The notes under the pieces are model-generated. The model did no database searches. It saw only the letters and a program-made list of their open reading frames with translations, and had not been told where the DNA came from. Made by a program: the position numbers and the translations under genes. A stretch of DNA of 64,000 nt from sequence record NC_025447.1. One strand, 5' to 3'. Within the stretch, counting starts at the first letter, position 1. Each line of letters begins with the position of its first letter. This document shows, in pieces, positions 1,868 to 55,108 of this stretch.

Positions 1868-2383
1868 ATGCCAATTCCTTATGTTAAAATTATTAATAAT
1901 ATTCTCGATTCATGGGAAGATGTTATTACTGGTAAAAAGCAACCATCACCAGTACATGCTTTATCTGGGAAACTTCAATTCAGAATGTCAAACCAAACTG
2001 AAACATTTAATAATCATGATATTTGCATTACATTAAAAACACCTATTAGTATTGTAATTAAAAAAAATAAAGATGATGAATTGACATTATCTATTGGTCG
2101 TGATAAAATCATTTTAAGTAATTTGTCTGAAGAAGAATTCTTTCAAAGAAGTACTATTATCGATATGAAAGATTTCACATATGAATCATTGGTTGAACTC
2201 AATACACGTTTTAACGATATTCAGGAACGATTGCGACCAATTCTTCGTATCGAAGAAGAAGCCTGGATTGAAAGTATTAGGAAGATGCAAGAAATGTTGA
2301 AAGAAAATATTAACAATCTGGGTAAAGCTACAATGGAATTTGGTAAAACTTTTAAACTGAACTTTTCAAAGGATCGTAAATGA
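1868..2383 (+). CDS. EExxFQxS-motif family protein
   Basis: SEEEFFQRSTIID; start moved to ATG1868, past the terminator. Confidence 0.75.
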   Translation: MPIPYVKIINNILDSWEDVITGKKQPSPVHALSGKLQFRMSNQTETFNNHDICITLKTPISIVIKKNKDDELTLSIGRDKIILSNLSEEEFFQRSTIIDMKDFTYESLVELNTRFNDIQERLRPILRIEEEAWIESIRKMQEMLKENINNLGKATMEFGKTFKLNFSKDRK

Positions 2384-2835
2384 AAATTGATAATTTGATT
2401 CATGTTTTAGGATCTTTACATAAAATATTATCACATCTACATGAGATAAAGAAACTGGGATTTAACATCTCAAATTCAATTGAAACTACATTTAAATATC
2501 AATCAATTACTGGTGATGGTTATTACATAATCGAATATACCTATGAAACCGATCCAGACTTCTATCCTCTTACGTTGAGAATTTATCCAACAAATCCGAG
2601 AGGAATTCACGACATATCATCAATTTCACTTGATCCAGATGGTGAAACGAGTATTGAATACAATAATGATTCAAAACCAGAATTTTACATTGATGATATT
2701 AAAATGATGTTCAACGATGAATATGTGTTCCAGCAAAGTACTGTGCATGATGTTGGAAGTACTAATGGACAATTTTGGAATACATGTTATTATCATATGA
2801 TTGAAATTTGTAAATTACTAAAAGGCGATGATTAA
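2380..2835 (+). CDS. EExxFQxS-motif family protein
   Basis: NDEYVFQQSTVHD; ATGA coupling. Confidence 0.75.
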   Translation: MKIDNLIHVLGSLHKILSHLHEIKKLGFNISNSIETTFKYQSITGDGYYIIEYTYETDPDFYPLTLRIYPTNPRGIHDISSISLDPDGETSIEYNNDSKPEFYIDDIKMMFNDEYVFQQSTVHDVGSTNGQFWNTCYYHMIEICKLLKGDD

Positions 2836-3218
2836 TGAAATACAGCATTGAAGTACATTACACTACAGGGGACACTGAAAATTGTTATGACGTTCTTAAT
2901 ACAATTGATATTCAATGGTCTTCTAAAGAGGAAGCAGTTGCTGCTTTACAGTGCCTAAAAGAGCATTGGGTGTTTTATATGAAGCAAGATAATTGCTATA
3001 CTAAAGAACACGAAACTATCGTTGAAAATGCTAAACAAAAAGAGTGGTTTGACCCAATATCACCAGAATATTCATTCTTGGTTAAAGTTGGCGATGTGAC
3101 AGTTCCATTACGAACACCGTGGAACGGCTACTTTGAAACTCTTCATAATGCACGAGTTGTCGCTGTTGATAATCCTGAGCAAATCGATTTCGATTCATTG
3201 GACTGGAAAAAACTATGA
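2835..3218 (+). CDS. hypothetical protein
   Basis: ORF track; TAATG coupling. Confidence 0.75.
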   Translation: MKYSIEVHYTTGDTENCYDVLNTIDIQWSSKEEAVAALQCLKEHWVFYMKQDNCYTKEHETIVENAKQKEWFDPISPEYSFLVKVGDVTVPLRTPWNGYFETLHNARVVAVDNPEQIDFDSLDWKKL

Positions 3219-3658
3219 CAGTACTGCACCAATTGAAGAAGGTTAAGCATCCAGTTGTATACGAGGATTGGAAACGACAGAAATTGATGGGTGATTTTTA
3301 TTTCCCAAAATCTAAAGTTCTTGCGAATTCAAGATGTACATATGTCACACATAATTATAAAGATACAGTATTTGTTGAAATGGGTTTCAATCCATCAAAT
3401 ACAATGTTCAGTACTAACCAGACATTTTACAAATTTCATATCAATAAAGATTCATTTTCTATTATGATTATAAAATTTTTAGTTGAAGATCTGGTATACA
3501 GTGAAGAAAGAGTTCCTTTATCATTAGTGGATATTCCTTATGATAATTTAGAGGAAATGTACTTCCAACAGTTGACAGTGCAAGAAAACTTCGGTATGAT
3601 AGGACTTCAAGAGTTAGAGATGATTAAGCAAATTCGTGATATCTACTTTAAGGAGTAA
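3215..3658 (+). CDS. EExxFQxS-motif family protein
   Basis: LEEMYFQQLTVQE. Confidence 0.75.
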   Translation: MTVLHQLKKVKHPVVYEDWKRQKLMGDFYFPKSKVLANSRCTYVTHNYKDTVFVEMGFNPSNTMFSTNQTFYKFHINKDSFSIMIIKFLVEDLVYSEERVPLSLVDIPYDNLEEMYFQQLTVQENFGMIGLQELEMIKQIRDIYFKE

Positions 3659-3660
3659 CT

Positions 3661-3804
3661 ATGCCAGTACGTAACAGTACTTCACGCTTTACGCTTCAAC
3701 AGAAAGCAGATCTTTTGAATATGGCTAACAAAGATTCTAATTTTTACTATCTAGTACTCGGTGGGTCAGTAGAAAAGATTGACCTACGTGAGTGTATGAA
3801 ATAA
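3661..3804 (+). CDS. 47-aa hypothetical protein
   Basis: SD AAGGAG; manually translated. Confidence 0.6.
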   Translation: MPVRNSTSRFTLQQKADLLNMANKDSNFYYLVLGGSVEKIDLRECMK

Positions 3805-3820
3805 CAAAAGGGGACTAAAA

Positions 3821-3991
3821 ATGAGTCTACGTGAATCATGGGAACAATTTAAAGAAGAGATTGGTTATCGTGGTGTTAAGATTGAAAAAATCAATCGAAC
3901 CGAAAGCATCAAAGCCAGTACTAATGGCACTACCTATGATCGTTATGATGAAAAGTATGGTTTGCATTCTAAACCGAAGGATACTGAATAA
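3821..3991 (+). CDS. 56-aa hypothetical protein
   Basis: SD GGGG; manually translated. Confidence 0.6.
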   Translation: MSLRESWEQFKEEIGYRGVKIEKINRTESIKASTNGTTYDRYDEKYGLHSKPKDTE

Positions 3992-4134
3992 TGGTATACA
4001 CTAACATTTTTACTGGTATTATGCGTAAATTTATTAATGGTACTGGATACGTATCTAATGACAACGGTAGTACATGGGTAAAAAATAATACGTCTGAATC
4101 TTTAGTAAAAAGTCTTCCGTATTATAAAGCTTGA
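3991..4134 (+). CDS. 47-aa hypothetical protein
   Basis: TAATG coupling; manually translated. Confidence 0.5.
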   Translation: MVYTNIFTGIMRKFINGTGYVSNDNGSTWVKNNTSESLVKSLPYYKA

Positions 4135-4159
4135 CACATGAAAATGGAGTATATATAAT
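4131..4159 (+). promoter_or_regulatory. sigma70-type early promoter
   Basis: TTGACA-17-TATAAT. Confidence 0.8.
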
Positions 4160-4191
4160 ACTCCTATATTAATTAAACGAGGATATACGAA

Positions 4192-4764
4192 ATGGCTGGT
4201 GTTGATAAAATTTGTGAATTCAGTTCAGATTATGAAGGTTACGAGATGTACAAGTCCAAGCGTAATCACATTCAAGTACTGTCAAAGTACCGTAAAGAAT
4301 TCCGAGGCCACAAAGCAACATTGTATGTTTTTGAGAATGGATATTCTGAAGTTTTCACAAGTGGTGGGTACAGTACAGCTAACATGGCACATATCAACCC
4401 AAACCCAACTGAAGATGATTGGAATAGTGGTAACGCTTTTCGTATTTCAATTTTGAATAAAATGAATCGTTACGACCGTTATTGTACATTCTTTGAAAAT
4501 ATTTCAGAATACAAACAAGCATTAAAGAAATATAATCAACGCTTACTAATGAATTATGATTACATTCTTCATGTGCCAACTGTTCCAGGTCAGGTTAATG
4601 GTCTGTATACGAATAGTACACATGATTTAACTGCGGTGAAGCGTCGCCTCAAACGTATGTTGGGTTGTCGTAATTTAACAATCAAGGTTATGCGTAATGA
4701 ATCAATGTATAACTTTTTAGATGTACTACACTACACACTGAAGGATAATAATGGAAACGATTAA
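4192..4764 (+). CDS. hypothetical protein
   Basis: ORF track; SD GAGG. Confidence 0.8.
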   Translation: MAGVDKICEFSSDYEGYEMYKSKRNHIQVLSKYRKEFRGHKATLYVFENGYSEVFTSGGYSTANMAHINPNPTEDDWNSGNAFRISILNKMNRYDRYCTFFENISEYKQALKKYNQRLLMNYDYILHVPTVPGQVNGLYTNSTHDLTAVKRRLKRMLGCRNLTIKVMRNESMYNFLDVLHYTLKDNNGND

Positions 4765-4948
4765 GTTTATGTTTGAGGTGTTTGTTGCATTCATCTTATG
4801 TGCTGTGTCTCTTACTATTGCTTTAATCCCAGTAATCGTTTACCAAGTTAATGGTGGGACAGATCCAACAATTGATATTTTACTTCGTTGTTTCGGCTTT
4901 TTTATATGGTTGGCGATGTTTATGTACTACATGCATCTTGAGGATTGA
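4751..4948 (+). CDS. small 2-TM membrane protein
   Basis: Two hydrophobic segments. Confidence 0.65.
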   Translation: METIKFMFEVFVAFILCAVSLTIALIPVIVYQVNGGTDPTIDILLRCFGFFIWLAMFMYYMHLED

Positions 4949-5781
4949 TTATGTCATTAGAAAAAATAATCATTTCTGAATTCCGAAAGTATATCATGGA
5001 TTGTGATAGAGATGTGCAGCGTAAGTTCAATGAGTACCTTGACAAATATCCGTATTTGATGTTTAATCCGTTTGAAACTGATGATGATTTATATCTTGGT
5101 TTTTACATAGGATTTACTCAACGAATTCTTCATAAAGATGAAATGAAACAATCTGAGATTTGGGTAGAAACTGACTCATCAGAGTCTAATGTTTTTTATC
5201 TTTATACATATTATGCCGAAATTGTTAGAGATACGACACCTGATGGTTGTCTATTTATACAATCGTCTGATATTGAAAGAATATATATCGAACCTGTATC
5301 TTTAGATATGGTTGCCCAGCTTCCAACTATCCAACAGTTAGGTGCAGACGAATTAACTTATTCTGTATTTGAATATCTAGGTAGAGATGATTTGACTCAA
5401 GAAATTGATAAAATGGTTTCTAAATATACTTCATCACTTATTTCAAATGGTAAACTTAAATTAGAATTAATTTTTGAAGATACTAGTATTAATCCAGTAA
5501 GAGGGGTAACAATTGGAAAAGTTACCATACGTGTTGTTTACGATAATGAAGTATTAGGATATATTTCAAAACGTGGACATGATTTATGTATAATTAGTAC
5601 ATTCGTTGTTTCTCGTAAAAAATGGAATGATTTAATGCAAAAAATCGTGGACGGTAGTAAAATTCGTGATATAATATGTAATGACATGGTAATTATTAAT
5701 CCTGATGTTGACTGTGATGTATATTTTCCAGTTCCTGGATTTACACGAGAAAACTTTAGTAAATTGAAGGATAAGAAATGA
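4945..5781 (+). CDS. hypothetical protein
   Basis: 278-aa ORF coupled to neighbours. Confidence 0.8.
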   Translation: MIMSLEKIIISEFRKYIMDCDRDVQRKFNEYLDKYPYLMFNPFETDDDLYLGFYIGFTQRILHKDEMKQSEIWVETDSSESNVFYLYTYYAEIVRDTTPDGCLFIQSSDIERIYIEPVSLDMVAQLPTIQQLGADELTYSVFEYLGRDDLTQEIDKMVSKYTSSLISNGKLKLELIFEDTSINPVRGVTIGKVTIRVVYDNEVLGYISKRGHDLCIISTFVVSRKKWNDLMQKIVDGSKIRDIICNDMVIINPDVDCDVYFPVPGFTRENFSKLKDKK

Positions 5782-6068
5782 AAATTTTAGAAGTCTTGCT
5801 AGAAAAAGATGCATCTGGTACTCTTTATGTTGGTAATGAGTTCAGTCCAGATCCAATTGATATGTTACAGAGAATCCAAACACTGACTCAAAACATCTCG
5901 GTTAAAAAACCGTTTCAGAAAGAATTGGAAATCTTTTGTGATAAAGATATTGAACAGCATGATAATGTGATTTCAGATATTAAAAGTCTATTGACAAAAA
6001 ATGGTTATGTAGAGTATAATCCTCCTATCGTAATCGTTATTCCAGACTTCATGAAAGGAACAATTTAA
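5778..6068 (+). CDS. hypothetical protein
   Basis: ORF track; ATGA coupling. Confidence 0.7.
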   Translation: MKILEVLLEKDASGTLYVGNEFSPDPIDMLQRIQTLTQNISVKKPFQKELEIFCDKDIEQHDNVISDIKSLLTKNGYVEYNPPIVIVIPDFMKGTI

Positions 6069-6337
6069 TGACTAAAGAAGAAATGAAATCTCGCTTAAGC
6101 GAACTGAAGAAAGAACGTAAACTAGTACGTTTAGACTGGGATATCCTTAACAGGAAAGATGAGCAATCATATGCTAACTGGAGTTCTGATAAAGTACGAA
6201 ATGACCGTTCTAAAGAAGATGCAAAGCAATTCATGGCATTATCGAAGCGACTATCATCTTTGAACAGTGAAATTACTGGCCTTCAGAAAGAGATTATTTC
6301 CATTCTTAAAGCGGAGATTGAATCACTCTATGAATAA
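6068..6337 (+). CDS. coiled-coil hypothetical protein
   Basis: Heptad-like K/E/L pattern. Confidence 0.7.
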   Translation: MTKEEMKSRLSELKKERKLVRLDWDILNRKDEQSYANWSSDKVRNDRSKEDAKQFMALSKRLSSLNSEITGLQKEIISILKAEIESLYE

Positions 6338-6626
6338 ACATGAAGTAATTCATTTTGATGATAAGATCTATATTCCAAATATTGATAGTACTGAAACATA
6401 TTACCTAATCAATAAGATTATGGCTGAAACAAATACGTGTTGTCGTCAACAGCCAGGAAAATATGAGTTCAGTCAGACTATTGGTTATTACCGATATGAT
6501 ATGTTAGAATCATTTACAATTGATAAGTCTAAAGTTATTGACATTCTTGTACAGAATGGATATAATGAACAACGTGTAAATAATACAGATTTACCAGTTT
6601 CAAAAATTGTTCTTTCTAATAATTAA
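6330..6626 (+). CDS. hypothetical protein
   Basis: Start moved to ATG6330. Confidence 0.7.
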   Translation: MNKHEVIHFDDKIYIPNIDSTETYYLINKIMAETNTCCRQQPGKYEFSQTIGYYRYDMLESFTIDKSKVIDILVQNGYNEQRVNNTDLPVSKIVLSNN

Positions 6627-6741
6627 AAATTGGACAAGAACAGATATTGTGATATAATGTTTGTTATCGGCAGATATTAAAATGCAAACCATTCCTCAAT
6701 GATGAGGGTTTTTCATAAAAAAGAAATAAAAGGGTATTAAA

Positions 6742-6951
6742 ATGGCTAAAGAAACTAACGCACAAGTACTAGATATCACCGACTTCGACCGCACTGTGAA
6801 CTACATTCAATTCCAGATTCATCAAGCAGAAGAAGCTCTAGCAGTATTCCACGGTACTGGTGCAAGGCCAATCCGTTTTGCTCACTTGATTGCATGGAAG
6901 AAAAGTCTTCAAGAAGAACTATCTGAACTGCGTAAAGCAAATCGTAAGTAA
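6742..6951 (+). CDS. hypothetical protein
   Basis: ORF track; promoter-like TATAAT at 6653. Confidence 0.7.
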   Translation: MAKETNAQVLDITDFDRTVNYIQFQIHQAEEALAVFHGTGARPIRFAHLIAWKKSLQEELSELRKANRK

Positions 6952-6962
6952 TTTATCTTACC

Positions 6963-6989
6963 GCCTCATCATTTTTGATGGGGCATTTT
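6963..6989 (+). terminator. intrinsic terminator
   Basis: GCCTCATCA-TTTT-TGATGGGGC plus ATTTT. Confidence 0.65.
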
Positions 6990-7016
6990 AATCATATAAA
7001 GTAAGAGGATTTATAA

Positions 7017-7523
7017 ATGAGTGTTGAATATTGGTTTTTGTTTGTGTGTATTGGTACACTTGCATTAATCACCATTGGATTGATTTTCAATACCATGATT
7101 AGTGGAAGTAAGTACTTTAAGACATTCCAACTTTTAATGTCTGCTATGCCATATAGTGCTGATGCCGAAAAAACAATTTCTCTAATTTTAGATAAGTTCG
7201 ATGCAAATCTTTTGGTGGCTAAAATTTCAGCATGTGATACAAATATTTCATTTTACACTGTAGAGACAGAACAGAATGGGATTGATACACAATACTCAAA
7301 TCCAGTAGTTGCTGAAATTTTCATTGGTTCAAAATATTATGCCTATGGATATGTAAGAAAATATTATTCAGAAGCAAAAGCTGAGTTGACGAAGAAGCGA
7401 CCATCAATAAAAACTTTAAAACGCATCATTGCGTTGGAAAAATCACTTCGTGGTCAAACAAGCGTTAATGAGCCACCATCAGTGATTAAATCCAAAAAAA
7501 GTAATGTTGTGGAGTTGGAGTAA
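7017..7523 (+). CDS. N-terminally anchored membrane protein
   Basis: Hydrophobic residues 6-25. Confidence 0.75.
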   Translation: MSVEYWFLFVCIGTLALITIGLIFNTMISGSKYFKTFQLLMSAMPYSADAEKTISLILDKFDANLLVAKISACDTNISFYTVETEQNGIDTQYSNPVVAEIFIGSKYYAYGYVRKYYSEAKAELTKKRPSIKTLKRIIALEKSLRGQTSVNEPPSVIKSKKSNVVELE

Positions 7524-7813
7524 TGGAACCAGAAAAATCAAGAAAAATTCTTATTGATGTCCAAACTAAATTATTAGATATTATGGAAATCATCAATGAG
7601 TTACCACAGGGTTATCAGTACAAAGTTCGTGAAATGTTATCTTGTGCCGAAACCGTTGTTTCTATGTACGATGATATTCAACATGGTATTATCCCTGATA
7701 TTCTCAAAGATGACGTAAATATTAACACTGAGGTAAAAGAAACTAAATTAGAATCAGAAACAGTATCTAATAAAAAAGTTCTAGACCTTAGTGGTATAAA
7801 AATTAATATCTAA
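7523..7813 (+). CDS. hypothetical protein
   Basis: ORF track. Confidence 0.7.
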   Translation: MEPEKSRKILIDVQTKLLDIMEIINELPQGYQYKVREMLSCAETVVSMYDDIQHGIIPDILKDDVNINTEVKETKLESETVSNKKVLDLSGIKINI

Positions 7814-7835
7814 AAAACATCCAATAGGAGAAGTA

Positions 7836-7985
7836 ATGAGTAATCAAAAAATCGACTTAGTAGTAAAACTTCAAGAGATTCAAGCACTAGCTAAAGACCT
7901 TGATAACACACGTGCATCAGTAGTTGATTCACTATGTGCAACAATCCTGACTGTTTTTACAGATTACGAAAAGAAATCTGATTAA
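7836..7985 (+). CDS. 49-aa hypothetical protein
   Basis: SD AGGAG; manually translated. Confidence 0.65.
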   Translation: MSNQKIDLVVKLQEIQALAKDLDNTRASVVDSLCATILTVFTDYEKKSD

Positions 7986-7998
7986 ACGTTACTTTGTA

Positions 7999-8028
7999 AA
8001 TACCCAGTCAAGTACTGGGTATTTTTTT
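7999..8028 (+). terminator. intrinsic terminator containing AGTACT
   Basis: AATACCCAGT-CAAGT-ACTGGGTATT plus T run. Confidence 0.8.
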
Positions 8029-8039
8029 AAGGAAATAAA

Positions 8040-8432
8040 ATGACTGAATCAGAACTACACGAAATGATAGATTTCATTTATGAAATGGTGCAAGATAAAA
8101 ATAACATCAATACAATTACTACTGGACCAAGACAAATTGGTAACCAAATGACCTATTCGTTGTCTTTATGGTTACACCCGAACTTCAAGGTTGATTGTTT
8201 GTATTTCCGTCCTGATATTGATGCTTATTATTTTGTAAATCATGATGCATTAATGAAACCAAATAAGCGTACAGTTGATGATACCTTTGTGACACACCCA
8301 TTTTACCTGGCTGATTCCGAAGAAGATGAGTTTCAAAAGAACACAACGTTAAACCTAGGTGAAATTTGCATCCCTCACGAACTTAAAGATAAAATGAATC
8401 ACATCACAGAAGTTATGAAAACATGCTTGTAA
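8040..8432 (+). CDS. EExxFQxS-motif family protein
   Basis: SEEDEFQKNTTLN. Confidence 0.75.
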   Translation: MTESELHEMIDFIYEMVQDKNNINTITTGPRQIGNQMTYSLSLWLHPNFKVDCLYFRPDIDAYYFVNHDALMKPNKRTVDDTFVTHPFYLADSEEDEFQKNTTLNLGEICIPHELKDKMNHITEVMKTCL

Positions 8433-8480
8433 GTGCAATGAATCTCTAGTATAATACTATGACTTTTTTAAGGAGAACAT

Positions 8481-9050
8481 ATGAACTTTATTAAATTCAA
8501 CACATCTGAGTTAGAAGCATACTTTAATACAAATAATAAATTCAATATTATTCTTAAAGACGGAACAACTGTTATCGGAGTATCATTGCTTTCATTTGAT
8601 GGCGAAAAACTCAAAACTGTTTATAAATTCACCAATCTTGATGGTGATTACTGGGATACATCAGATGTATCTAAAATTTGTACACATTATGTATTTGAAT
8701 CAATTGAAGTTGGTGATGGATGGGCATTGACCTGTAATGGTAATAAAGTATTTTCTGGTAACATATTTGGGGTAATTTCAAGTAAAGAAATCGTAGACCA
8801 TCATCTTCATGTTCTCAATAATAACGCCAACACTTATACACCTGATAATATCAAAATTCACGATATTGTAACATATACTGATTATAATGGTTTCAGTCAT
8901 AAAGCAATCGTAACTGAAGTTAAAAAACCAAAAAATTATTTCGACCACGGTTTAATTGAAGTATATATGGTAGGTGGCGACACACAATACTTTGAACATT
9001 TCACTTATACTGGTTGGGATAGATTTCTAACCGTTATTGAGGAATACTAA
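8481..9050 (+). CDS. hypothetical protein
   Basis: ORF track; SD AAGGAG. Confidence 0.8.
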   Translation: MNFIKFNTSELEAYFNTNNKFNIILKDGTTVIGVSLLSFDGEKLKTVYKFTNLDGDYWDTSDVSKICTHYVFESIEVGDGWALTCNGNKVFSGNIFGVISSKEIVDHHLHVLNNNANTYTPDNIKIHDIVTYTDYNGFSHKAIVTEVKKPKNYFDHGLIEVYMVGGDTQYFEHFTYTGWDRFLTVIEEY

Positions 9051-9051
9051 C

Positions 9052-9540
9052 ATGCCTATTCGTGGTGTACCAGAGCCATTAAATGAAGTATTAAAATATG
9101 TTAATATTGAACTGCGAGATGTAAATCTTCGAAGAAATAATATATATTACTTTAAATCAACTGAAATGTGTTCAGTGCAAGTAATTATAGGTACATCTGT
9201 TAAGATAACTCGTGTACTTGATGGTAGTACAGATTTCGTCGAATACAACGTACTTACTAACAAAGTAACACACACATATAAATGGAGTGGGTATAAAACT
9301 ATTAAGTATGAGTTTGATGTTGCTAGAACTGAAGAAGAACGATTTATGTTAAGTACTATCAATCCAGCAAACTACCCTGAACTTGATACATTTTTGCTAA
9401 TTTTAAAACTGTATAATGAAGCAAATGGGAAAGCTAAGGAGTATGATAGAATTATGTATGAACGCAAAAAAGAACGTGCTCAGAAAAGTTATGATCTTTA
9501 TGATAACCCATATGTAAAATATAATAAGGGGAGAAAATGA
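9052..9540 (+). CDS. EExxFQxS-motif family protein
   Basis: TEEERFMLSTIN. Confidence 0.7.
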   Translation: MPIRGVPEPLNEVLKYVNIELRDVNLRRNNIYYFKSTEMCSVQVIIGTSVKITRVLDGSTDFVEYNVLTNKVTHTYKWSGYKTIKYEFDVARTEEERFMLSTINPANYPELDTFLLILKLYNEANGKAKEYDRIMYERKKERAQKSYDLYDNPYVKYNKGRK

Positions 9541-9941
9541 ATAACGAAGTTGAAATTATCATAACTCCACCTATACAAAGTCTTGATGTATCTATTAGTG
9601 ATTTTTTAGAAAAATATTATGAATGGTTTAATAATGATAATATCATTTATAATCATACATTACCAGATGGTTTCGTGGAGCTTATAGAATTAAATTCAAA
9701 ATCACTATACTTCTGTGTTGAATACAATGATTATATGACAGATGAAGCTTATCGTTTTCGTTGTACATTGTATCCGAATTATTTTTCAATAGGTTATAAA
9801 GACTACCAGTACTGCACCACTAACTACAGTGTAGAGGAAGAATTTCAGTACAATTTACTTTATCCAGATTTAGATTATACTATTGCAGTACTGTTATCTA
9901 AAATTATGGATTTTTATAAAGGTAAATACAGTGCAGCCTAA
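9537..9941 (+). CDS. EExxFQxS-motif family protein
   Basis: VEEEFQYNLLYPD. Confidence 0.7.
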   Translation: MNNEVEIIITPPIQSLDVSISDFLEKYYEWFNNDNIIYNHTLPDGFVELIELNSKSLYFCVEYNDYMTDEAYRFRCTLYPNYFSIGYKDYQYCTTNYSVEEEFQYNLLYPDLDYTIAVLLSKIMDFYKGKYSAA

Positions 9942-10116
9942 AACATTTGACGAGTGGTATCAAATGCATTACAATATAAATGCAGGTGATGTATACTTCT
10001 TTAAGTTGGAGTTGTTTTTATTGTTAAATGATCCCGAATCGTACTATAACAATATCATTTATTGTGATGATTTTAGTACATATTTTAGTATTGCAGTTAT
10101 GGATATAAAAAGATGA
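9931..10116 (+). CDS. MTHEEW-like microprotein (divergent, KTFDEW)
   Basis: GTG9931 in frame with ORF 9883..10116. Confidence 0.5.
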   Translation: MQPKTFDEWYQMHYNINAGDVYFFKLELFLLLNDPESYYNNIIYCDDFSTYFSIAVMDIKR

Positions 10117-10286
10117 CACATGAAGAATGGTTGGTACAAACTGAACACTTGGTTATAGCAAGTATGAAATTTTGAAATGAACAGTTGATGCACTTGGTAA
10201 GTAATAAAGCGTATTACGATGCATTCTTTGGGAAAAATGCTACAATTGAGGTTCATGTGTATTATGCTATTACATTTGGTGATTAA
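10113..10286 (+). pseudogene. MTHEEW microprotein with in-frame TGA
   Basis: MTHEEWLVQTEHLVIASMKF, TGA at 10173-10175, then 36 more in-frame codons. Confidence 0.55.
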
Positions 10287-10289
10287 TTT

Positions 10290-10457
10290 ATGAAATATGA
10301 ACATTTAAAATACTATGCTGATAGAATAAATTATTATCCCTTTTATATAAGATTAGATGCATTAATATCAAAAAAAGTTGTATATAAACGTTCTCAAGCT
10401 GATCTAACCAATATAGCATTCATTCTTGCAGTACTGTCTAAAATGGGATAATATTAA
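10290..10457 (+). CDS. 55-aa hypothetical protein
   Basis: Manually translated (MKYEHLKYY..). Confidence 0.5.
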
Positions 10458-10477
10458 ATTAAGATGGATATTAAGAG

Positions 10478-10654
10478 ATGACACATGAAGAATGGTTAGA
10501 TGAACTAAAATTCAAACATAATCCTTTTGGTTTTGGTATACGCCAAGGTCATTATGATGTGTTAAAAGATAAACAACTTTTCAAATCATTTGTACTTGAT
10601 GCGGATAGCAACCACTGGTTCATCTATGAGCTTGCAATTAGAGACAAAAAATAG
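10478..10654 (+). CDS. MTHEEW microprotein (58 aa)
   Basis: Manually translated; paralog of 10997..11179. Confidence 0.75.
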   Translation: MTHEEWLDELKFKHNPFGFGIRQGHYDVLKDKQLFKSFVLDADSNHWFIYELAIRDKK

Positions 10655-10659
10655 TAAGA

Positions 10660-10995
<336 letters not shown>

Positions 10996-10996
10996 A

Positions 10997-11179
10997 ATGA
11001 CACACGAAGAATGGATGTACAAACAGCATAAAGAACATGACTGCTTTGGGAATGGTATTCGTCAGGTACATTATGATATTCTCAAAGATATAAATTTATT
11101 CATAAAATATGTTTTGGATGAAAATAAACATTGGTTTATATATGAGATTGCATATAGAAACTCAAATAAACAAAAATAA
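10997..11179 (+). CDS. MTHEEW microprotein (60 aa)
   Basis: Internal ATG of ORF 10979..11179. Confidence 0.75.
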   Translation: MTHEEWMYKQHKEHDCFGNGIRQVHYDILKDINLFIKYVLDENKHWFIYEIAYRNSNKQK

Positions 11180-11193
11180 ATAAGGAATATATT

Positions 11194-11412
11194 ATGGAAA
11201 CAACGTTATTTGAAGTTATTCAAGCATTAAAAACTGGTGATGACATTCAAGTATTGCTACATGGTTATCGTTTAAAAGGCACTGTGGTTTTAGTTAATGA
11301 CACAACGTTAGTTATTGCCGAAACAAATCCATATGATAGTAATCAAGTTGCTAATATCCATATTGATATTAAAAGCATTATTGGTGTAGGCGTAAATAAA
11401 AATCAAGAATAA
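11194..11412 (+). CDS. possible Sm/Hfq-like fold protein
   Basis: 72 aa; beta-strand pattern IQVLLHGYRLKGTV..LVI..IHIDIKSIIGV. Confidence 0.45.
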   Translation: METTLFEVIQALKTGDDIQVLLHGYRLKGTVVLVNDTTLVIAETNPYDSNQVANIHIDIKSIIGVGVNKNQE

Positions 11413-11490
11413 CAAATGTTTTTGAAAAAAACCAGAAAATGAATGATTTTTTTGGACAACTCAAAAATATATGATATAATAATTAGTACA

Positions 11491-11580
<90 letters not shown>

Positions 11581-11584
11581 ATAT

Positions 11585-11680
<96 letters not shown>

Positions 11681-11689
11681 CTAAAAACC

Positions 11690-11854
11690 ATGACGCATGA
11701 AGAATGGATGAATGATATTAATTTTAGATATTCGGGTATCGGTAGTTGGCGAAAATATCATTGGGAAATTATTTCAGACCCAGCAGAATACGATAAACTT
11801 ATAAACCATGAAGTATATCCGTGGTTCTTTATTGAAATAATGGTACGAATATGA
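11690..11854 (+). CDS. MTHEEW microprotein (54 aa)
   Basis: Manually translated; tandem duplicate of the next gene. Confidence 0.8.
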   Translation: MTHEEWMNDINFRYSGIGSWRKYHWEIISDPAEYDKLINHEVYPWFFIEIMVRI

Positions 11855-12011
11855 CGCATGAAGAATGGATGAATGACATTAATTTTAGATATTCGGGTAT
11901 CGGTAAATGGCTAAAGTATCATTGGGAATTCATTTCAGAGCCACATATGTATGATAAACTTATCAACGATCCAGCATATGAAATGTACTTAATTGAACTA
12001 CTGGTACGAAT

Positions 12012-12015
<4 letters not shown>
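11851..12015 (+). CDS. MTHEEW microprotein (54 aa)
   Basis: First 18 aa identical to the previous gene; ATGA coupling. Confidence 0.8.
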
Positions 12016-12177
<162 letters not shown>

Positions 12178-12185
12178 AAAAAAAG

Positions 12186-12599
<414 letters not shown>

Positions 12600-12656
12600 C
12601 TAAATAATTCAGTACTGAGGATATTAATATGTTTAAAGATGAACGTCCAGATTTGT

Positions 12657-12694
<38 letters not shown>

Positions 12695-12715
12695 GAATTC
12701 CACAATCAGACGTAT

Positions 12716-13033: not shown

Positions 13034-13056
13034 TTTTTTTAATTAAAGTTGGCGAT

Positions 13057-13809
<753 letters not shown>

Positions 13810-13826
13810 TTCACATGATATAGGGA

Positions 13827-15980: not shown

Positions 15981-16421
<441 letters not shown>

Positions 16422-16429
<8 letters not shown>

Positions 16430-16787
16430 TCTAATAGTACGTATAATGCAAGATGTTTGTAATAACCTTTATACAGGCAATTTTGACGATCCGAACATAA
16501 AAATATTATGTTATGATGGTTTTACAATGGTACATCCAGCCTATTCAAATAATATCTACGTAGCATATACAGGTGAAAATCTATTGTATCAATTTGATAT
16601 ATATAGTACAATGACAAAGATAATTTTGGATGCATCTAAACCAGCAATCTTTATTGCTTCTCATGATTACCATTACACGGAAGAATCACTATTTCAGTAC
16701 TCAATGATTAATGACATTGGTGGGTTGACATTGGATGAGGTTAATGCTATACTAGCTGTCTCACGTTTGGTTAAAACCCACAATTAG
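16422..16787 (+). CDS. EExxFQxS-motif family protein
   Basis: TEESLFQYSMINDIGGLT. Confidence 0.8.
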
Positions 16788-17496: not shown

Positions 17497-17925
17497 GTGA
17501 ATGCAATGAGTTATTTGTTTACTTTAATTGATAAGTATGTTGACATTGTATACCGTCAAGTTTGTAGTGATACGTTTGAAACAAAAAACCCAATTAGAGA
17601 TGGAATTTTTGATGTTGCCGTTGGATCATTTTTGAATGGGTACACCGAGTCATTATACAACAGTAATAATATTTTTATTTCAGTTCAATCAAGGCATACA
17701 TCAGACTATGCTGTTAGCATTGATATTTGGGAAAATAATATAGAAATAGACATAACGGAACATACTAACATTTGTGTTGATGATACATTTAATCAATTAA
17801 CTGAAGAAATGTACTTGCAGTTGAATTTTGTACATGATCTTACAAATATCAGTTATGATACATTAAGGAAAATATGTTTTCTTAGTGGGGTGATTCGTAG
17901 TAATATGAGTAAGTATGGGAAGTGA
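17497..17925 (+). CDS. EExxFQxS-motif family protein
   Basis: TEEMYLQLNFVHDL. Confidence 0.75.
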   Translation: MNAMSYLFTLIDKYVDIVYRQVCSDTFETKNPIRDGIFDVAVGSFLNGYTESLYNSNNIFISVQSRHTSDYAVSIDIWENNIEIDITEHTNICVDDTFNQLTEEMYLQLNFVHDLTNISYDTLRKICFLSGVIRSNMSKYGK

Positions 17926-18343
17926 AATGTTAAAAATTCCACCTAAGTCGTTAACACATCTTATTGAATGTGGTGTAATATTTTCCGAAGGTGATACCTC
18001 ATCATACACATCGGTCGATGAACCTTATAATTTTTCATACCAATCTTATAAAAATAATTCTAAAATTTCTTGTAGAGAGGCTGAAAACATATTAATAGAT
18101 GTTTCGTTACATAATGTTCCGAAATTTTACATTGATATCTTTGGTGATTCTTTGACAATTCGAACATATGATTATTTTATTAACAAAGACCTCTTGAATC
18201 TTCCAATTGAACATGATAGTATAGATTCAGAACTTTTCTTTCAACTATCAACTGTTTATGATTTACAGGGTTTAACTGTTGAACAGTTGAATGGTATTTT
18301 TGAGATTTCACGAAACATACGAAGCAGGAACACAAATGTCTAA
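17915..18343 (+). CDS. EExxFQxS-motif family protein
   Basis: DSELFFQLSTVYDLQGLT. Confidence 0.8.
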   Translation: MGSEMLKIPPKSLTHLIECGVIFSEGDTSSYTSVDEPYNFSYQSYKNNSKISCREAENILIDVSLHNVPKFYIDIFGDSLTIRTYDYFINKDLLNLPIEHDSIDSELFFQLSTVYDLQGLTVEQLNGIFEISRNIRSRNTNV

Positions 18344-18746
18344 TATTTTAAATGAAAAAACAGTTGATGTTGCTATTGGCGTTCTTAACACCGCAACTTC
18401 ATTTCAGAAGAAACACAGTGTTGTATACTTTGGTGAAGATTGTTGGCTGAACTATACTAATAATTCGTTTATAATTCGTGTAGAGGCTGATGATATTGGA
18501 TTAACCGTTCAGGTAGGATATACCAAAACTGGTAAACAAATCACTGTCATTGTCGATAAACTTACGTCTTCTTTTTATGATAGTATAAATGATTGTGAAC
18601 ACTATAGTTCAACATTTTATGATACCGAAGAAGAACATTTTATGGATAGTACTGTTAAAGAGTTAGCTATTCCATATAATCTAATGAAAGCCGTGAGTGA
18701 TTTAATTTTAAAATATAAAAAAATAGGAGTTACTAATGCAATTTAA
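18336..18746 (+). CDS. EExxFQxS-motif family protein
   Basis: TEEEHFMDSTVKE; start moved to ATG18336. Confidence 0.75.
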   Translation: MSNILNEKTVDVAIGVLNTATSFQKKHSVVYFGEDCWLNYTNNSFIIRVEADDIGLTVQVGYTKTGKQITVIVDKLTSSFYDSINDCEHYSSTFYDTEEEHFMDSTVKELAIPYNLMKAVSDLILKYKKIGVTNAI

Positions 18747-32647: not shown

Positions 32648-32848
32648 ATGTTTACTTTATATCTTGCAGTAGTACTAACTAATGGTGAAATCACTCGCAC
32701 CGTTGGTGAAGGTGTATATAAAACACCTGATCAGTGTTACTCTGCAACTCATTGGCCTCGTGATGCTGGTGATGAAACTCGCACTGAATACAAATGTATG
32801 AAGGTTAAAGGTGACTTTGTAAATCTAAAGGTTATTGAGACTAAGTAA
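32648..32848 (+). CDS. hypothetical protein
   Basis: ORF track. Confidence 0.7.
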   Translation: MFTLYLAVVLTNGEITRTVGEGVYKTPDQCYSATHWPRDAGDETRTEYKCMKVKGDFVNLKVIETK

Positions 32849-33366
32849 TGGATATTAATGAGTTGTTGAAATTAGTGTTTAATCGTGAACGCCGCGATAC
32901 AAGACCAATTGAATATCAAGATGTGATACGCATTGAAACTGATTTCTGTTATGGTAAAACAACTCATGATCTTTTGAATCTCTCTGGAAAACGCTATGCT
33001 GATGTTTGTTTTTCAGAGAGAAGTGATGGTTCAGAAATAACAAGTACTGATATTGTTTGTTACGCACGCAGTGCTGATAAATCTTATGAAATAGAACTTA
33101 TATATTCCCCTAGTTCTAAAACAAATCATCACCGCCATATTTTATATGATGTTTACACACCACCTGGTATTGCTGAATATTTTGTTATTGATTATAGTAC
33201 TGAAGAAAATGTGTTTCAACAAAGTTTGATTCATAACTTTGAGGTGAATGATCCATTAGTACCAAAGTTGTTCAAACTACTTGACACCATCGATGTTGAC
33301 TTTGAATTTGTTATGTGCATTAGAACTTCTTTATTCAATGAATTCATGGAACTTTTTAATATATGA
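32848..33366 (+). CDS. EExxFQxS-motif family protein
   Basis: TEENVFQQSLIHN. Confidence 0.8.
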   Translation: MDINELLKLVFNRERRDTRPIEYQDVIRIETDFCYGKTTHDLLNLSGKRYADVCFSERSDGSEITSTDIVCYARSADKSYEIELIYSPSSKTNHHRHILYDVYTPPGIAEYFVIDYSTEENVFQQSLIHNFEVNDPLVPKLFKLLDTIDVDFEFVMCIRTSLFNEFMELFNI

Positions 33367-38400: not shown

Positions 38401-38973
38401 ATGAATCGTAAAGGTCGTTTTAAAGTATCAAAAAAGAACAAAAGTTCTAGGTTTAAACCTATTGTTTTAACAGTTAAATCTAACAAAGATTTAACTGCAC
38501 TTAGTAAAAAGATAATTTCATCTAAGATTGAAGTATCATACGTAAATTCATTAAAATATATGAATGTCAAACCACTGGACCAACTCATTTCACTTATATT
38601 TGAACGTAATGATTTTGAGATATCAGTAGATGATTATAGAGCCTATAATGCTGGTTTCATTAATGTTACTTGTAATAAAAAACTAACTGAGTTGGAAAAT
38701 TTGTCATGTATAATAAATCTAGATAAAGGTGTTGTGAAGTACCATTTTGTACATTTCACTAATATCAATAATGGAATGGGTGTACAATCCAGACCTATAG
38801 TGCCTACGTGTGATGTTACTAAATTAGCAAAGCTCAATGATGAAGAATATTTTCAAGAAAGCATTGTAACTGAGCATTTAGATGATATAATAGCTACTTA
38901 CAAAGAATGCATATGGGTGTTGAATGCTATAAAACCTAAATTGTGTTTAATGAATATTGTTCGTGATTTATGA
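38401..38973 (+). CDS. EExxFQxS-motif family protein
   Basis: NDEEYFQESIVTE; start moved to ATG38401. Confidence 0.75.
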   Translation: MNRKGRFKVSKKNKSSRFKPIVLTVKSNKDLTALSKKIISSKIEVSYVNSLKYMNVKPLDQLISLIFERNDFEISVDDYRAYNAGFINVTCNKKLTELENLSCIINLDKGVVKYHFVHFTNINNGMGVQSRPIVPTCDVTKLAKLNDEEYFQESIVTEHLDDIIATYKECIWVLNAIKPKLCLMNIVRDL

Positions 38974-53299: not shown

Positions 53300-53667
53300 T
53301 GGAAATTGCTCTTATTATCTTAACTGCTATGCTGTTTATTAGTACTGTGGTTATAATTGGTAAATTCTTTTGTGTATCATTTTTAGAAACGGTATACGAT
53401 GAAATTGCTGATGATTATGAATTCCAAGCCGGATTTTTCATTACGTATTGGCTTAGTTTATTTTGTCTAGTCATTGCTTGGATTTTACATATCTTTAAAT
53501 GGGGTATGGTAGACGGTGATCCTATTATGGCAATTATTGTTCTAGTGTTTGGTATCCTTGGTGGTGCAGTGCATAATCTAATGGTTATCTGGCAAACTGT
53601 TCAATATGTTTTGGTTCCCTATTTCGAAAAGATGCACAGTACAATTAAAAAACGTAAACGAGGTTAG
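53299..53667 (+). CDS. 3-TM paralog family, array 2
   Basis: IGKFFC; tail KKRKRG. Confidence 0.75.
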   Translation: MEIALIILTAMLFISTVVIIGKFFCVSFLETVYDEIADDYEFQAGFFITYWLSLFCLVIAWILHIFKWGMVDGDPIMAIIVLVFGILGGAVHNLMVIWQTVQYVLVPYFEKMHSTIKKRKRG

Positions 53668-53668
53668 T

Positions 53669-54031
53669 ATGAACGGGATAGAATTATCTTTCGTTGGTCA
53701 ATTACTAGTAATGGCGTATACATTTATCTTCTCACTGAATGCATTCGTGTGCATTGGGAAGTACTTCCATAAGCGACCATTATCAAATATATATGATGTA
53801 ATCCAAAAGAGATATAGTCCAGCATATACTGTGTTGGGTACAGTATTCAATTTTGGTTTTATTGTATTAATAATTGGACTGTTCACATCCTCTTTGAATA
53901 CAATAACCTTCGGTCTTATGATATGTTCATTGGTATTAGCCGTAATTATATGTTGTTTAGTACTGCACCTTGTGGTACTATTGTATATAAAGATCTCTGA
54001 AATCCACCAACGTTTGGGTATGAGGAAATAA
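53669..54031 (+). CDS. 3-TM paralog family, array 2
   Basis: IGKYFH; start moved to ATG53669. Confidence 0.75.
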   Translation: MNGIELSFVGQLLVMAYTFIFSLNAFVCIGKYFHKRPLSNIYDVIQKRYSPAYTVLGTVFNFGFIVLIIGLFTSSLNTITFGLMICSLVLAVIICCLVLHLVVLLYIKISEIHQRLGMRK

Positions 54032-54032
54032 T

Positions 54033-54404
54033 ATGAGTTACCGTGAGATATTTTCCATTATTTCAATTATTATGTTCAGTACTGGAACACTGGTATGGTT
54101 ATTATACTTCTTCTGTATTAATCCAGTGTATAATATGTTATGTAATATTAAATCAAGTGCCGGATATATCACTTTTATGGTCTTTATGGGATATTATTGT
54201 CTAAGCATTTTAGGTGTTGTTTTGGTTGTTATATTTGATGTGGGACCAAATAGTGATGGTATGGAAATACATGAATTAATAACCATGTTTGGATGTATGA
54301 TACCAACAGCACTACTGTTTGTAGCTACTGGTAGTGGATTGATAAAATTATATAATTATTTAAAATCCATTCATAATTCCATTCATAATAAGCGTATGTC
54401 ATAA
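54033..54404 (+). CDS. 3-TM paralog family, array 2
   Basis: LLYFFC; tail SIHNSIHN. Confidence 0.75.
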   Translation: MSYREIFSIISIIMFSTGTLVWLLYFFCINPVYNMLCNIKSSAGYITFMVFMGYYCLSILGVVLVVIFDVGPNSDGMEIHELITMFGCMIPTALLFVATGSGLIKLYNYLKSIHNSIHNKRMS

Positions 54405-54405
54405 T

Positions 54406-54434
54406 AAAAATCCAGTACTTGATAGTACTGGATT
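54406..54434 (-). terminator. minus-strand terminator built from two AGTACT sites
   Basis: TCCAGTACT-TGAT-AGTACTGGA with A5 on its left. Confidence 0.7.
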
Positions 54435-54445
54435 AATAAGGAGTT

Positions 54446-55108
54446 ATGATGAAAACAAAATTAGGTTTGTTTTATAAAAATTATTTCGTTAAACAGCGTA
54501 AATTTATAAAAAAATATTTCTCTGGTGAGAAGTCTAGTCCTATAATTTTTAAAAGACCAAGTTATAATACTTACTTAGCTGGTGCTAAACAGTCTAAGAA
54601 ATTTATTACTCTTTTACATAAAAACAAAATTAAAGCTTCTTATGTTGAAACGAGAAGAAACTCATCAATAACTCCTGGTGATTTTATTGAGTACGGATGT
54701 TTCAATATTAAGTACAATGATAATACATACTTTATGGATATTGATTGTAATACATCCAATCTTTTTAACATTGTAGTAAATCCATTAAAACAATATAATG
54801 TTTATGGTGATTCTATTATCAAATTAATCAAAAACAAAGATAGCTTTGATTTTGAAATAAATGTTTTAGATGATAATTTTGACGAAGTACCAGTAAACCC
54901 TGAAATCTGTGATATTTTAAACAGTTTAAAAGGTAGTACCTACAATATATCATCTGATTTAATGTTTCAGTACTCATTAATCCATAAAGATATTGAAAAG
55001 TATATTGAATGCTCCAAAATTTTGAATTATCTTTACGATGAATTTAAAAAGAGTTCTAAAATAACCGCATACACTTTGTACAATATTCCTAAAATGGTGA
55101 ATCTTTGA
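54446..55108 (+). CDS. EExxFQxS-motif family protein (divergent)
   Basis: SSDLMFQYSLIHKD. Confidence 0.7.
   Translation: MMKTKLGLFYKNYFVKQRKFIKKYFSGEKSSPIIFKRPSYNTYLAGAKQSKKFITLLHKNKIKASYVETRRNSSITPGDFIEYGCFNIKYNDNTYFMDIDCNTSNLFNIVVNPLKQYNVYGDSIIKLIKNKDSFDFEINVLDDNFDEVPVNPEICDILNSLKGSTYNISSDLMFQYSLIHKDIEKYIECSKILNYLYDEFKKSSKITAYTLYNIPKMVNL

Follow-up and report, generated by a model that had tools for sequence, protein, structure and literature searches.

Lineage-specific expansions of paralogs have been described in jumbo phages, where small, fast-diverging genes of unknown function stand in tandem on the same strand and take up a large share of the genome. Multigene families of similar appearance occur in large eukaryotic DNA viruses, such as the poxvirus ankyrin/PRANC adaptors, which are arrayed divergent paralogs sharing one small conserved element and having presumed host-interaction roles. 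The SUKH/Imm-type immunity arrays of polymorphic toxin systems likewise consist of tandem divergent paralogs encoding small acidic alpha+beta proteins, while p32/gC1qR/Mam33 are acidic proteins in which an N-terminal helix precedes an antiparallel sheet and a pair of C-terminal helices, MAM33 being a eukaryotic mitochondrial family.

We analysed a window of 64,000 nucleotides (bases 62001-126000) from Escherichia phage 121Q (Asteriusvirus) and show that 16 of its ORFs are members of a single, hitherto undescribed superfamily of one-domain proteins in RaK2-like jumbo phages. The family resembles the jumbo-phage expansions in all the features given above; however, the papers compared define neither the family itself nor its signature helix, its spread or its size, which is about 67 members in 121Q and at least 41 in Klebsiella phage K64-1, and recognition of these genes as a single family was found nowhere in the databases or literature searched. 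The poxvirus adaptors are built from repeats and a separate docking domain, whereas the 121Q proteins form a single small domain and the host is bacterial. Unlike the SUKH/Imm arrays, the family has no profile match and no fold match in the PDB, and no toxin gene is annotated beside its tandem arrays in the annotations checked; membership of the SUKH/Imm/CdiI profiles was rejected, as among 60 members SUKH_6 (E=0.021) and CdiI_4 (E=0.025) each matched a single one, at chance level. It differs from p32/gC1qR/Mam33 in the six strands of its model, in a similarity that is not significant (E>=0.036, TM ~0.25) and in having no sequence-profile match.

All 16 ORFs picked out in the initial annotation exist, and each is an annotated CDS of 121Q, named gp93, 94, 96, 110, 112, 113, 128, 130, 141, 142, 146, 147, 148, 181, 197 and 233 in RefSeq; the RefSeq start differs from that of the initial annotation for gp147 (17927, not the upstream ATG at 17915) and gp233 (54449, not 54446). 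Their description as divergent paralogs was borne out by an independent profile, built from 152 sequences of other phages (none from 121Q, none >=40% identical to 121Q) and scored against 1251 ORFs, which at E<=1e-3 retrieved 14 of these members and matched nothing on the minus strand or beyond the family. Two members were marginal (gp110, E=0.034; gp113, E=1.0) and gp233 barely passed at 8.8e-4. Leave-one-out profiling placed 14 of 16 at rank 1 among about 331 other ORFs, and false matches to the family profile numbered 0 among 509 minus-strand ORFs. The estimate of at least 16 paralogs is the full count within the window; genome-wide it is far too low, since iterated profile searches recovered 67 in 121Q, some lying in two tandem arrays and others scattered. 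With about 67 to 71 copies, the family makes up roughly 11% of the genes of the phage (about 1 in 9). Genes in the tandem arrays lie on the same strand and often overlap. The window also holds a second large tandem family of 121Q, an array of RCC1-like paralogs on the minus strand (55089-64000), which differs from the present family in length (about 370 aa), strand, recognisable repeat fold, existing annotation and unrelated sequence.

All the window members are encoded on the plus strand, and the E-values given here are those of the independent profile. gp93 (1868..2383; 171 aa) carries the motif and a long C-terminal extension, scores E=2e-13 (rank 4 of 1251) and ranks first in the leave-one-out test; it is overlapped by 4 nt by gp94 (2380..2835; 151 aa; E=9.6e-8), which has a collinear reciprocal best hit in K64-1. 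The N-terminal part of gp96 (3215..3658; 147 aa; E=6.5e-9) scores 16.6 bits by itself, the highest of the window members. The marginal gp110 (8040..8432; 130 aa), whose motif is one residue shorter before FQ, nevertheless ranks first on leave-one-out (E=0.03). gp112 (9052..9540; 162 aa; E=3.1e-7) has an FM variant of the motif and a reciprocal best hit in K64-1, and is followed by the weakest member, gp113 (9537..9941; 134 aa), with a shortened motif and leave-one-out rank 5 (E=0.22), which enters the family via iterated search only. gp128 (12246..12599; 117 aa; E=3e-11) is preceded by a strong sigma-70-like promoter at 12187 (match 11/12), and its dN/dS against TH47 is 1.15 at low dS; gp130 (13057..13428; 123 aa; E=3.4e-4) has a shortened motif and leave-one-out rank 1. 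The two best matches are adjacent: gp141 (15986..16429; 147 aa; E=5.4e-16, rank 1), which has an acidic loop, and gp142 (16422..16787; 121 aa; E=9.4e-15, rank 2), which overlaps it by 8 nt and is linked to it by blastp at E=5e-10. Upstream of gp146 (17497..17925; 142 aa; GTG start; LQ variant; E=6.6e-5) lie a strong promoter-like site at 17428 and a terminator-like hairpin at 17459. It is followed by gp147 (17927..18343; 138 aa; E=8e-12), the protein modelled below, and by gp148 (18336..18746; 136 aa; FM variant; E=4.4e-11), which overlaps gp147 by 8 nt and has a reciprocal best hit in K64-1. Two members are isolated, gp181 (32848..33366; 172 aa; E=1.7e-7), with the top score of the iterated family profile (84 bits), and gp197 (38401..38973; 190 aa; E=2.2e-6), with a basic N-terminal extension. 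The outlier is gp233 (54449..55108; 219 aa from the RefSeq start), which has an FQxSLI core without the acidic cap and leave-one-out rank 281; its N-terminal part is atypical, scoring 0.9 bits, like decoys.

The signature lies on a helix of 10 residues and reads [TS]-E-E-x-aromatic-F-Q-x-S-[TL]-[VIL]-x-[DNE], its F standing 30-80 residues from the C-terminus. The motif is far above chance: depending on its form, 8-12 plus-strand ORFs carry it, where shuffles give 0.2-1.0, and the minus strand has none. Of 194 plus-strand ORFs, 8 contain the strict form E[ED]..FQ, compared with 0.24 +/- 0.47 over 500 shuffles of the residues, while none of the 152 minus-strand ORFs does; a looser form is present in 12 plus-strand ORFs against 0.64 in shuffles. 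An amphipathic helix had been proposed to follow, and it is seen both in the model and in the column statistics, which place a regular hydrophobic stripe along the C-terminal helix. As first suggested, the short conserved helix together with this amphipathic helix is the sole strongly conserved element. A block of 13 residues shows 83-99% identity, and every other column exceeds 2.4 bits of entropy. The polar motif residues are identical in 87% (E), 83% (E), 94% (Q) and 87% (S) of 254 sequences, figures that are inflated by the picking of members with motif-dominated profiles. The block is kept in Asteriusvirus, Alcyoneusvirus, Munch-like phages and unknown metagenomic phages.

In order to describe the fold, we used an AlphaFold2 model of gp147, which is of medium confidence (pLDDT 75.6, pTM 0.67). 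It runs from a helix (6-15) through six strands to the motif helix (101-110), the most confident part of the model (block pLDDT 93), and a last helix (118-136). The initial model of gp142 was poor (pLDDT 46.6), with its elements in the same order as in gp147. The predicted layout is thus shown to be an N-terminal helix, a six-stranded antiparallel sheet, the motif helix and a C-terminal amphipathic helix, in one compact domain. The N-terminal parts had been described as very different, and pairwise this holds: blastp linked 70 of the 2211 member pairs in 121Q at E<1e-3, and the N-terminal parts alone do not link. Family-wide, however, a weak signal persists in them, as a profile trained on other phages separated these parts alone from decoys with an AUC of 0.88 (p=4e-25). 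This shared profile signal and the single-domain model speak against the modular build proposed earlier, in which separate, unrelated target-binding N-terminal domains are fused to a C-terminal docking helix.

Pairwise methods miss most of the family: few pairs are linked by blastp, and in PHROGs the 16 members of the window fall into about 15 families of unknown function (only phrog_17453 unites three). Searches of known families gave no Pfam family common to the members (16 members; 60 members), no match in NCBIfam or PADLOC, and no relatives in the PDB, where a sequence search with family profiles found no p32 chain. In other phages, the members of K64-1 lie in two syntenic arrays; Salmonella phage Munch has 10 members in a 41-kb piece, and arrays of 7 and 11 members occur on metagenomic contigs. 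In a library of 1.8 billion proteins we obtained 146 representative clusters at a library-wide E<=1e-3, of which 140 carry the motif, and the best structural matches in BFVD were uncharacterised proteins of GAP32, CBB, fHe-Yen9-03/04 and RaK2. Between 121Q and K64-1, members share 28.8% identity with their orthologs and other genes 52.7%; despite the collinear arrays, no K64-1 ortholog is detectable for 53 of the 67 members. All 13 genes tested against TH47 are kept. The genes are under purifying selection, yet they diverge far more rapidly than the genes around them, at roughly double the pace of the genome as a whole outside the family. The rise in pooled dN/dS (0.29 against 0.17) is mild and does not demonstrate an arms race.

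What the invariant helix does can be approached from its tolerated substitutions, which fit a buried keystone of the fold and a docking site equally well: Q is replaced by M only and F by L only, T/L and V/I/L interchange, and cap-type residues alternate at the acidic ends. A possible, if rather unlikely, reading, which recasts the earlier docking proposal for a single domain, is that the members are adaptors, the exposed polar face of the helix (E-E, Q, S, D) docking onto one partner while the variable sheet picks targets; that partner might be a host hub or a phage machine, for example the ClpA-like/ClpP-like/ClpS-like/HslV-like set of 121Q. The near-identity of the 13-residue block amid variable columns, its retention across distant phages, and the presence of these Clp/HslV-type proteins in 121Q itself argue for docking. 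However, E, N, K and H never take the place of Q, a pattern that points to packing and not to a hydrogen bond with a partner; neither the model nor the N-part profile contains a separate targeting domain; and the Clp link consists in the co-presence of genes in one genome. In its strongest form, which we consider unlikely, the helix would be a universal handle by which some 70 paralogs per genome with differing surfaces plug into a single host or phage machine, such as the Clp/HslV-type proteolytic set. If true, RaK2-like jumbo phages would possess a programmable repertoire of substrate adaptors to remove or rewire host proteins, a phage counterpart to the substrate-receptor families of eukaryotic viruses.

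The acidity of the members and the hydrophobic stripe of their last helix would also suit oligomerisation, with the conserved and amphipathic helices forming the subunit interface of homo- or mixed oligomers resembling the acidic rings of the p32/MAM33 type. p32/gC1qR/Mam33 chains came consistently on top in Foldseek searches of the PDB, sharing the order of helix, antiparallel sheet and two helices, but the matches are not significant (E 0.036-0.6, TM ~0.25, rmsd ~14 Å), and Pfam MAM33 matched none of 16 members at E<=0.1 and none of 60 at E<=10; we regard this explanation as improbable. The grouping of conserved acidic and polar residues at one spot could point to a small enzyme or ligand-binding domain, with E-E, Q, S and D making up a site for catalysis or for a metal or ligand in all copies. 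This is highly improbable, given that about 70 copies per genome would be odd for one enzyme, the remaining columns are too variable to supply the rest of an active site, and no enzyme family was matched in Pfam, NCBIfam or the PDB. Being short, sharply defined and at a fixed distance from the C-terminus, the motif might be a protease cleavage site or a DNA or RNA element (recombination, regulatory), an interpretation that we find barely credible. Synonymous codons differ at the motif F, Q, S and E, with both serine codon families in use, and the 39-nt block is only 51% identical between copies; as the motif codons vary synonymously, the family is conserved at the protein and not the DNA level, which refutes a nucleic-acid element. 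Cleavage sites of this class lie in accessible linkers of virion or polyprotein substrates, whereas the motif lies within the most confident helix of a compact predicted domain and no member bears a virion-protein annotation in the annotations checked.

We tentatively favour an early-expressed repertoire of diversified binders, in which the invariant helix is mainly a keystone of the fold and possibly also a common contact surface. The plus strand of the window has 35 strong sigma-70-like sites where shuffles have 2.5, and genome-wide there are 107 on the plus strand against 14 on the minus strand. As the arrays lie among such promoters, early transcription by host RNA polymerase is predicted from these promoter-like matches. 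The product would be a set of small acidic proteins (the members have a median pI of 4.76 against 5.46, p=4e-6) whose hypervariable sheet and loops may each bind a different putative target, a host or competitor protein, yielding a diversified set of inhibitors or neutralisers for host takeover or counter-defence; the promoter-rich, non-structural setting fits such a role. The keystone would consist of a helix cap and of F/Q/S/[TL]/[VI], probably buried, as the substitution patterns suggest, and packed on the sheet and last helix, letting the fold bear extreme divergence of its surface. The top model confidence of the motif helix and the restricted substitutions argue for this keystone; against it, the identity of the polar residues goes beyond the usual need of capping or packing, though it is inflated as noted above.

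These findings mean that a single family accounts for about one in nine of the 121Q genes and for a similar fraction of those of K64-1, and that it has been retained by several phage genera with hosts in the Enterobacterales as well as by uncultivated relatives. The 'dark matter' of jumbo phages is usually seen as hundreds of unrelated orphans; much of it here reduces to one fold with one signature. The family provides a profile for annotation, one fold with many surfaces for structural work and an entry to early host interaction. If the helix is a common docking element, it would represent a new principle of phage-host interference.

Over its first 20 kb the window matches Escherichia phage 121Q (NC_025447.1 / KM507819.1; bases 62001-82000, plus strand) with 100% identity. 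This phage belongs to Asteriusvirus and is a RaK2-like jumbo myovirus with a genome of 348.5 kb; the RefSeq annotation of its bases 62001-126000 labels all 16 ORFs considered here as 'hypothetical protein'. These are gp93, 94, 96, 110, 112, 113, 128, 130, 141, 142, 146, 147, 148, 181, 197 and 233, all on the plus strand, with RefSeq starts slightly displaced from those read initially (gp147 at 17927, gp233 at 54449). The initial annotation had claimed a common motif in all 16, and we observed it in 16 of the 16 translations. It was not a product of composition: E[ED]..FQ was found in 8 of 194 plus-strand ORFs as against 0.24 ± 0.47 in 500 residue shuffles, and in none of the 152 minus-strand ORFs, while a looser form of the motif was found in 12 plus-strand ORFs against 0.64 in shuffles. 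The paralogs are as divergent as had been supposed, their pairwise similarity being nearly nil, and blastp joined only gp141/142/147 and gp110/130. Leave-one-out profiles nevertheless placed 14 of the 16 at rank 1 against about 331 other ORFs, with gp113 at rank 5 and gp233 at rank 281. An independent profile was built from 152 family sequences, none of them from 121Q and none at least 40% identical to any 121Q ORF. Searched against 1251 ORFs of the whole 121Q genome, it gave exactly 60 matches at E<=1e-3, all of them family members and none on the minus strand. Fourteen of the 16 window members passed this threshold, gp233 at 8.8e-4, with gp110 (E=0.034) and gp113 (E=1.0) falling outside it. 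The original observation is confirmed, two of the 16 members being marginal.

The estimate of at least 16 paralogs holds as a minimum, but iterated profile searches of the whole 121Q genome converged on 67, again with no match on the minus strand. A profile of the window's 16 members detected seven members on which it had not been trained directly upstream of the window (gp80 and gp83-88, 121Q 58.1-61.8 kb, E 3e-8 to 3e-5), and revealed another array, larger than the first, spanning roughly 160.8-189.2 kb of 121Q. At convergence the family comprised these 7 upstream members, the window's 16, a further 39 from gp342 to gp408, and gp256, gp436, gp505, gp534 and gp536, altogether about 11% of 121Q genes; four or five degenerate candidates, all outside the window, lay just under threshold. 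Only 70 of 2211 pairs of members were linked by blastp at E<1e-3, and in PHROGs the window's 16 fall into some 15 separate families whose function is unknown, which explains why the family went unnoticed. Paralogues have been reported to make up nearly 10% of RaK2 gene products (PMC3622015), 22 paralogous ORFs were described in CBB (PMC5259590), and arrays of related genes in phAPEC6 were taken as evidence of tandem duplication (PMC7247149). A comparative survey of jumbo phages describes expansions of other kinds, the zinc ribbons of phage G among them (PMC7824862). Within the literature searched, where journal coverage was partial, we found these general remarks on paralogs for RaK2, CBB and phAPEC6 and no description of the family or its motif.

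We determined the residue share of each column in 254 aligned members, numbering from the motif F as 0. Taken as upper bounds, since members were ascertained with motif-weighted profiles, the shares were T 50% and S 28% at -5, E 87% at -4, E 83% at -3, E 46% at -2, Y, F or L 78% at -1, F 99% at 0, Q 94% and M 6% at +1, S 87% at +3, T 49% and L 44% at +4, V, I or L 98% at +5, and D, N or E 85% at +7. All columns outside these positions had an entropy above 2.4 bits, although a D/N turn column was discernible 24 residues upstream of F. The helix following the motif had been described as amphipathic, and the column statistics of the same 254 members bear this out: hydrophobic residues form a regular stripe along that last helix. 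The motif is conserved at the protein level. Codons at the motif F (TTT 41, TTC 24), Q (CAG 32, CAA 31) and S (AGY 33, TCN 17) varied, and the 39-nt motif block was 51% identical between copies; this codon variation rules out a DNA-level element or a recombination hot spot.

An AlphaFold2 model of gp147, generated from an alignment of 60 diverse homologs, had a pLDDT of 75.6 and a pTM of 0.67, and consisted of a helix (6-15), six strands, and helices at 101-110 and 118-136. The helix at 101-110 coincides exactly with motif positions -4 to +5 and is the best-predicted block (pLDDT 93). The model of gp142 (36-sequence alignment, pLDDT 46.6) was too poor for use; the order of its elements was the same as in gp147. 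The T/S-E-E-E start of the motif resembles a helix N-cap, as does a T/S-x-E/D sequence ahead of the last helix, a reading that draws on general helix statistics. The N-terminal parts had been pictured as unrelated domains carried on a conserved module. When linked pairwise, 123 of 250 were singletons and no pairwise grouping emerged. A profile of N-terminal parts trained on other phages only set them apart from 814 decoys with an AUC of 0.88 (p=4e-25), or of 0.83 for those that no pairwise link joined to a training sequence. This family-wide signal, to which gp233 is the exception with a score at decoy level, contradicts the modular picture; the family is therefore one domain and not a module on unrelated domains.

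Searches for a known counterpart gave no match common to the members in Pfam, NCBIfam, PADLOC or PDB sequence searches, with either single members or profiles, and Foldseek of the model against PDB gave no match at E<=1e-3. Chains of the p32/gC1qR/Mam33 type were consistently at the top of the PDB Foldseek list (E 0.036-0.6, TM about 0.25, rmsd about 14 A). Since these values are insignificant and no sequence match is shared, 'p32-like' denotes a topological resemblance only and is a weak lead. One of the 60 homologs in the modelling alignment had a significant Pfam match to a RecQ-1-like helix-turn-helix (E=3.7e-12), which was absent from the ten longest on rescan. Resemblances to ADP-ribosyltransferase, Nudix and clamp-binding motifs were considered and rejected because the residue order does not fit and no profile supports them. 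Against BFVD, the best Foldseek matches were uncharacterised proteins (TM up to 0.61) from Yersinia fHe-Yen9-03/04, Cronobacter GAP32, Pectobacterium CBB, RaK2, Erwinia pEa_SNUABM_50 and PBECO4.

When the alignment of the 16 was used in a word-indexed protein search, only close Asteriusvirus orthologs came back. Profiles reached further. In the 200 kb scanned of Klebsiella phage K64-1 (Alcyoneusvirus), 36 ORFs were detected by the window-only profile and 41 by the iterated profile, in two arrays syntenic with both 121Q arrays and with no member on the minus strand; the 41-kb piece scanned of Salmonella phage Munch held 10 members. Among 1.84 billion representative proteins, 146 clusters matched a profile of 36 paralogs at a library-wide E<=1e-3, all of 62-217 aa and every one named 'hypothetical protein' in its source database. 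The motif was present in 140 of the 146. Identity to an ORF of 121Q or K64-1 reached 50% in only 49, and 21 had no blastp similarity to either phage. Two of these 21 lie on AT-rich metagenomic contigs that carry 7 and 11 members and are crowded with small ORFs on the same strand; a neighbouring protein there had its best isolate match in Erwinia phage Hallingskeid at only 31% identity. In the isolate phage collection, another blastp-orphan representative matched Hallingskeid only, and one further representative had no match. Many cluster proteins are labelled Escherichia coli or Salmonella enterica in NCBI records, on contigs of 320-384 kb; evidently whole jumbo-phage genomes sit inside bacterial assemblies, by carrier state or contamination.

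Between 121Q and K64-1, just 14 members formed reciprocal best hits, which were collinear, and 53 of 67 had no detectable K64-1 ortholog. The 14 pairs had a median identity of 28.8%, as against 52.7% for the 177 pairs of other genes (p=9e-7). In TH47, a phage of the same genus compared over the first 20 kb of the window, 13 of 13 family genes were kept, with a pooled dN/dS of 0.29 vs 0.17 for 22 neighbours. Retention, dN/dS and identity together indicate that the copies are individually maintained, functional genes with unusually fast divergence. Across genes of window 1-20000, synonymous divergence from TH47 ranged from 0.06 to 2.2, and six non-family genes (window 8481, 10780 and 13831-15136) had no full ortholog there; the pattern is that of a recombination mosaic with cassette turnover.

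Counting as strong a sigma-70-like site with at least 11 of 12 matches, we found 35 on the window's plus strand, where shuffles averaged 2.5 ± 1.3. The whole genome had 107 such sites on the plus and 14 on the minus strand, concentrated between 50 and 120 kb and between 140 and 160 kb, the latter just upstream of the second array. To judge from these promoter-like sites and their context, the arrays would be transcribed early by host polymerase. Many members overlap a neighbour by 4 or 8 nt, and members are more acidic than size-matched ORFs (median pI 4.76 vs 5.46, net charge -9 vs -4, p=4e-6). The annotation places eight tRNA genes between family members in window 10682-15969 (Gly, Ser, Leu, Ser, Met, Asn, Thr and another Ser-type). 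Rfam recovered 5 of these tRNA genes at its gathering threshold; tRNA genes likewise occur among the family arrays of phage Munch. The methyltransferase gene gp91 (window 483-1343) lies just upstream of gp93, with gp92 between them, and so stands between the run gp80-88 and the window members; a DNA methylase with internal intein (Hint) and LAGLIDADG endonuclease matches similarly adjoins a family array on metagenomic contig L015 (9548-11443). A second tandem multigene family, made up of some 15 RCC1-like genes each about 1.1 kb long, runs on the minus strand from window 55089-64000 to 121Q 131255 (positions 1-5255 of L005, a stretch outside the window); its very short annotated pieces gp235, gp237 and gp240 may be fragments of broken copies. 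Two same-strand runs of consecutive ORFs of about 60-75 aa, some 17 at L005 5358-9194 (121Q 131.4-135.2 kb) and some 22 at L005 29736-34781 (121Q 155.7-160.8 kb), look like additional tandem mini-gene families. The roughly 2 kb that follow the first run (121Q 135.2-137.2 kb) carry no annotation, and about 720 bp between the sigma-factor gene gp167 and gp168 (window 28233-28954) has no annotated gene.

The evidence on the role of the invariant helix is divided. Q is replaced by M only and F by L only, T alternates with L and V with I or L, and the acidic positions accept D, S, P, G and A; this pattern points to packing and capping, that is, to a keystone of the fold. Conservation of E, E, Q and S at the level of identity points instead to an added shared function, be it docking, oligomerisation or a ligand. 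We rank first, if tentatively, the reading in which the helix mainly holds the fold while sheet and loops vary as binding surfaces. The initial annotation had proposed that the helix docks onto one shared partner; this we place second and consider rather doubtful. An obvious candidate hub, and a possible set of partners, would be the phage's own ClpS-like adaptor, ClpA-like ATPase, two ClpP-like proteases and HslV-like peptidase (121Q stretches L003 22461-23006, L004 1-2013, and L006 38364-39059, 42420-43028 and 43356-43952). The conserved helix could also form part of an oligomer interface, which we judge unlikely, or of an enzyme or ligand site, more improbable still. That the motif serves as a cleavage or nucleic-acid element is scarcely credible: the codon variation speaks against the latter, and a cleavage site is ruled out by the position of the motif inside a confident helix and by the fact that no member is annotated as a virion protein.

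Taken together, our analysis establishes that the family is real, large and old, that it evolves fast, and that its acidic proteins are single domains with one invariant helix. So far it is specific to jumbo phages of the RaK2-like kind and to uncultivated relatives of theirs. With the helix as keystone of the fold, the family may provide these phages with an early-expressed repertoire of diversified proteins that would bind or inhibit proteins of the host.
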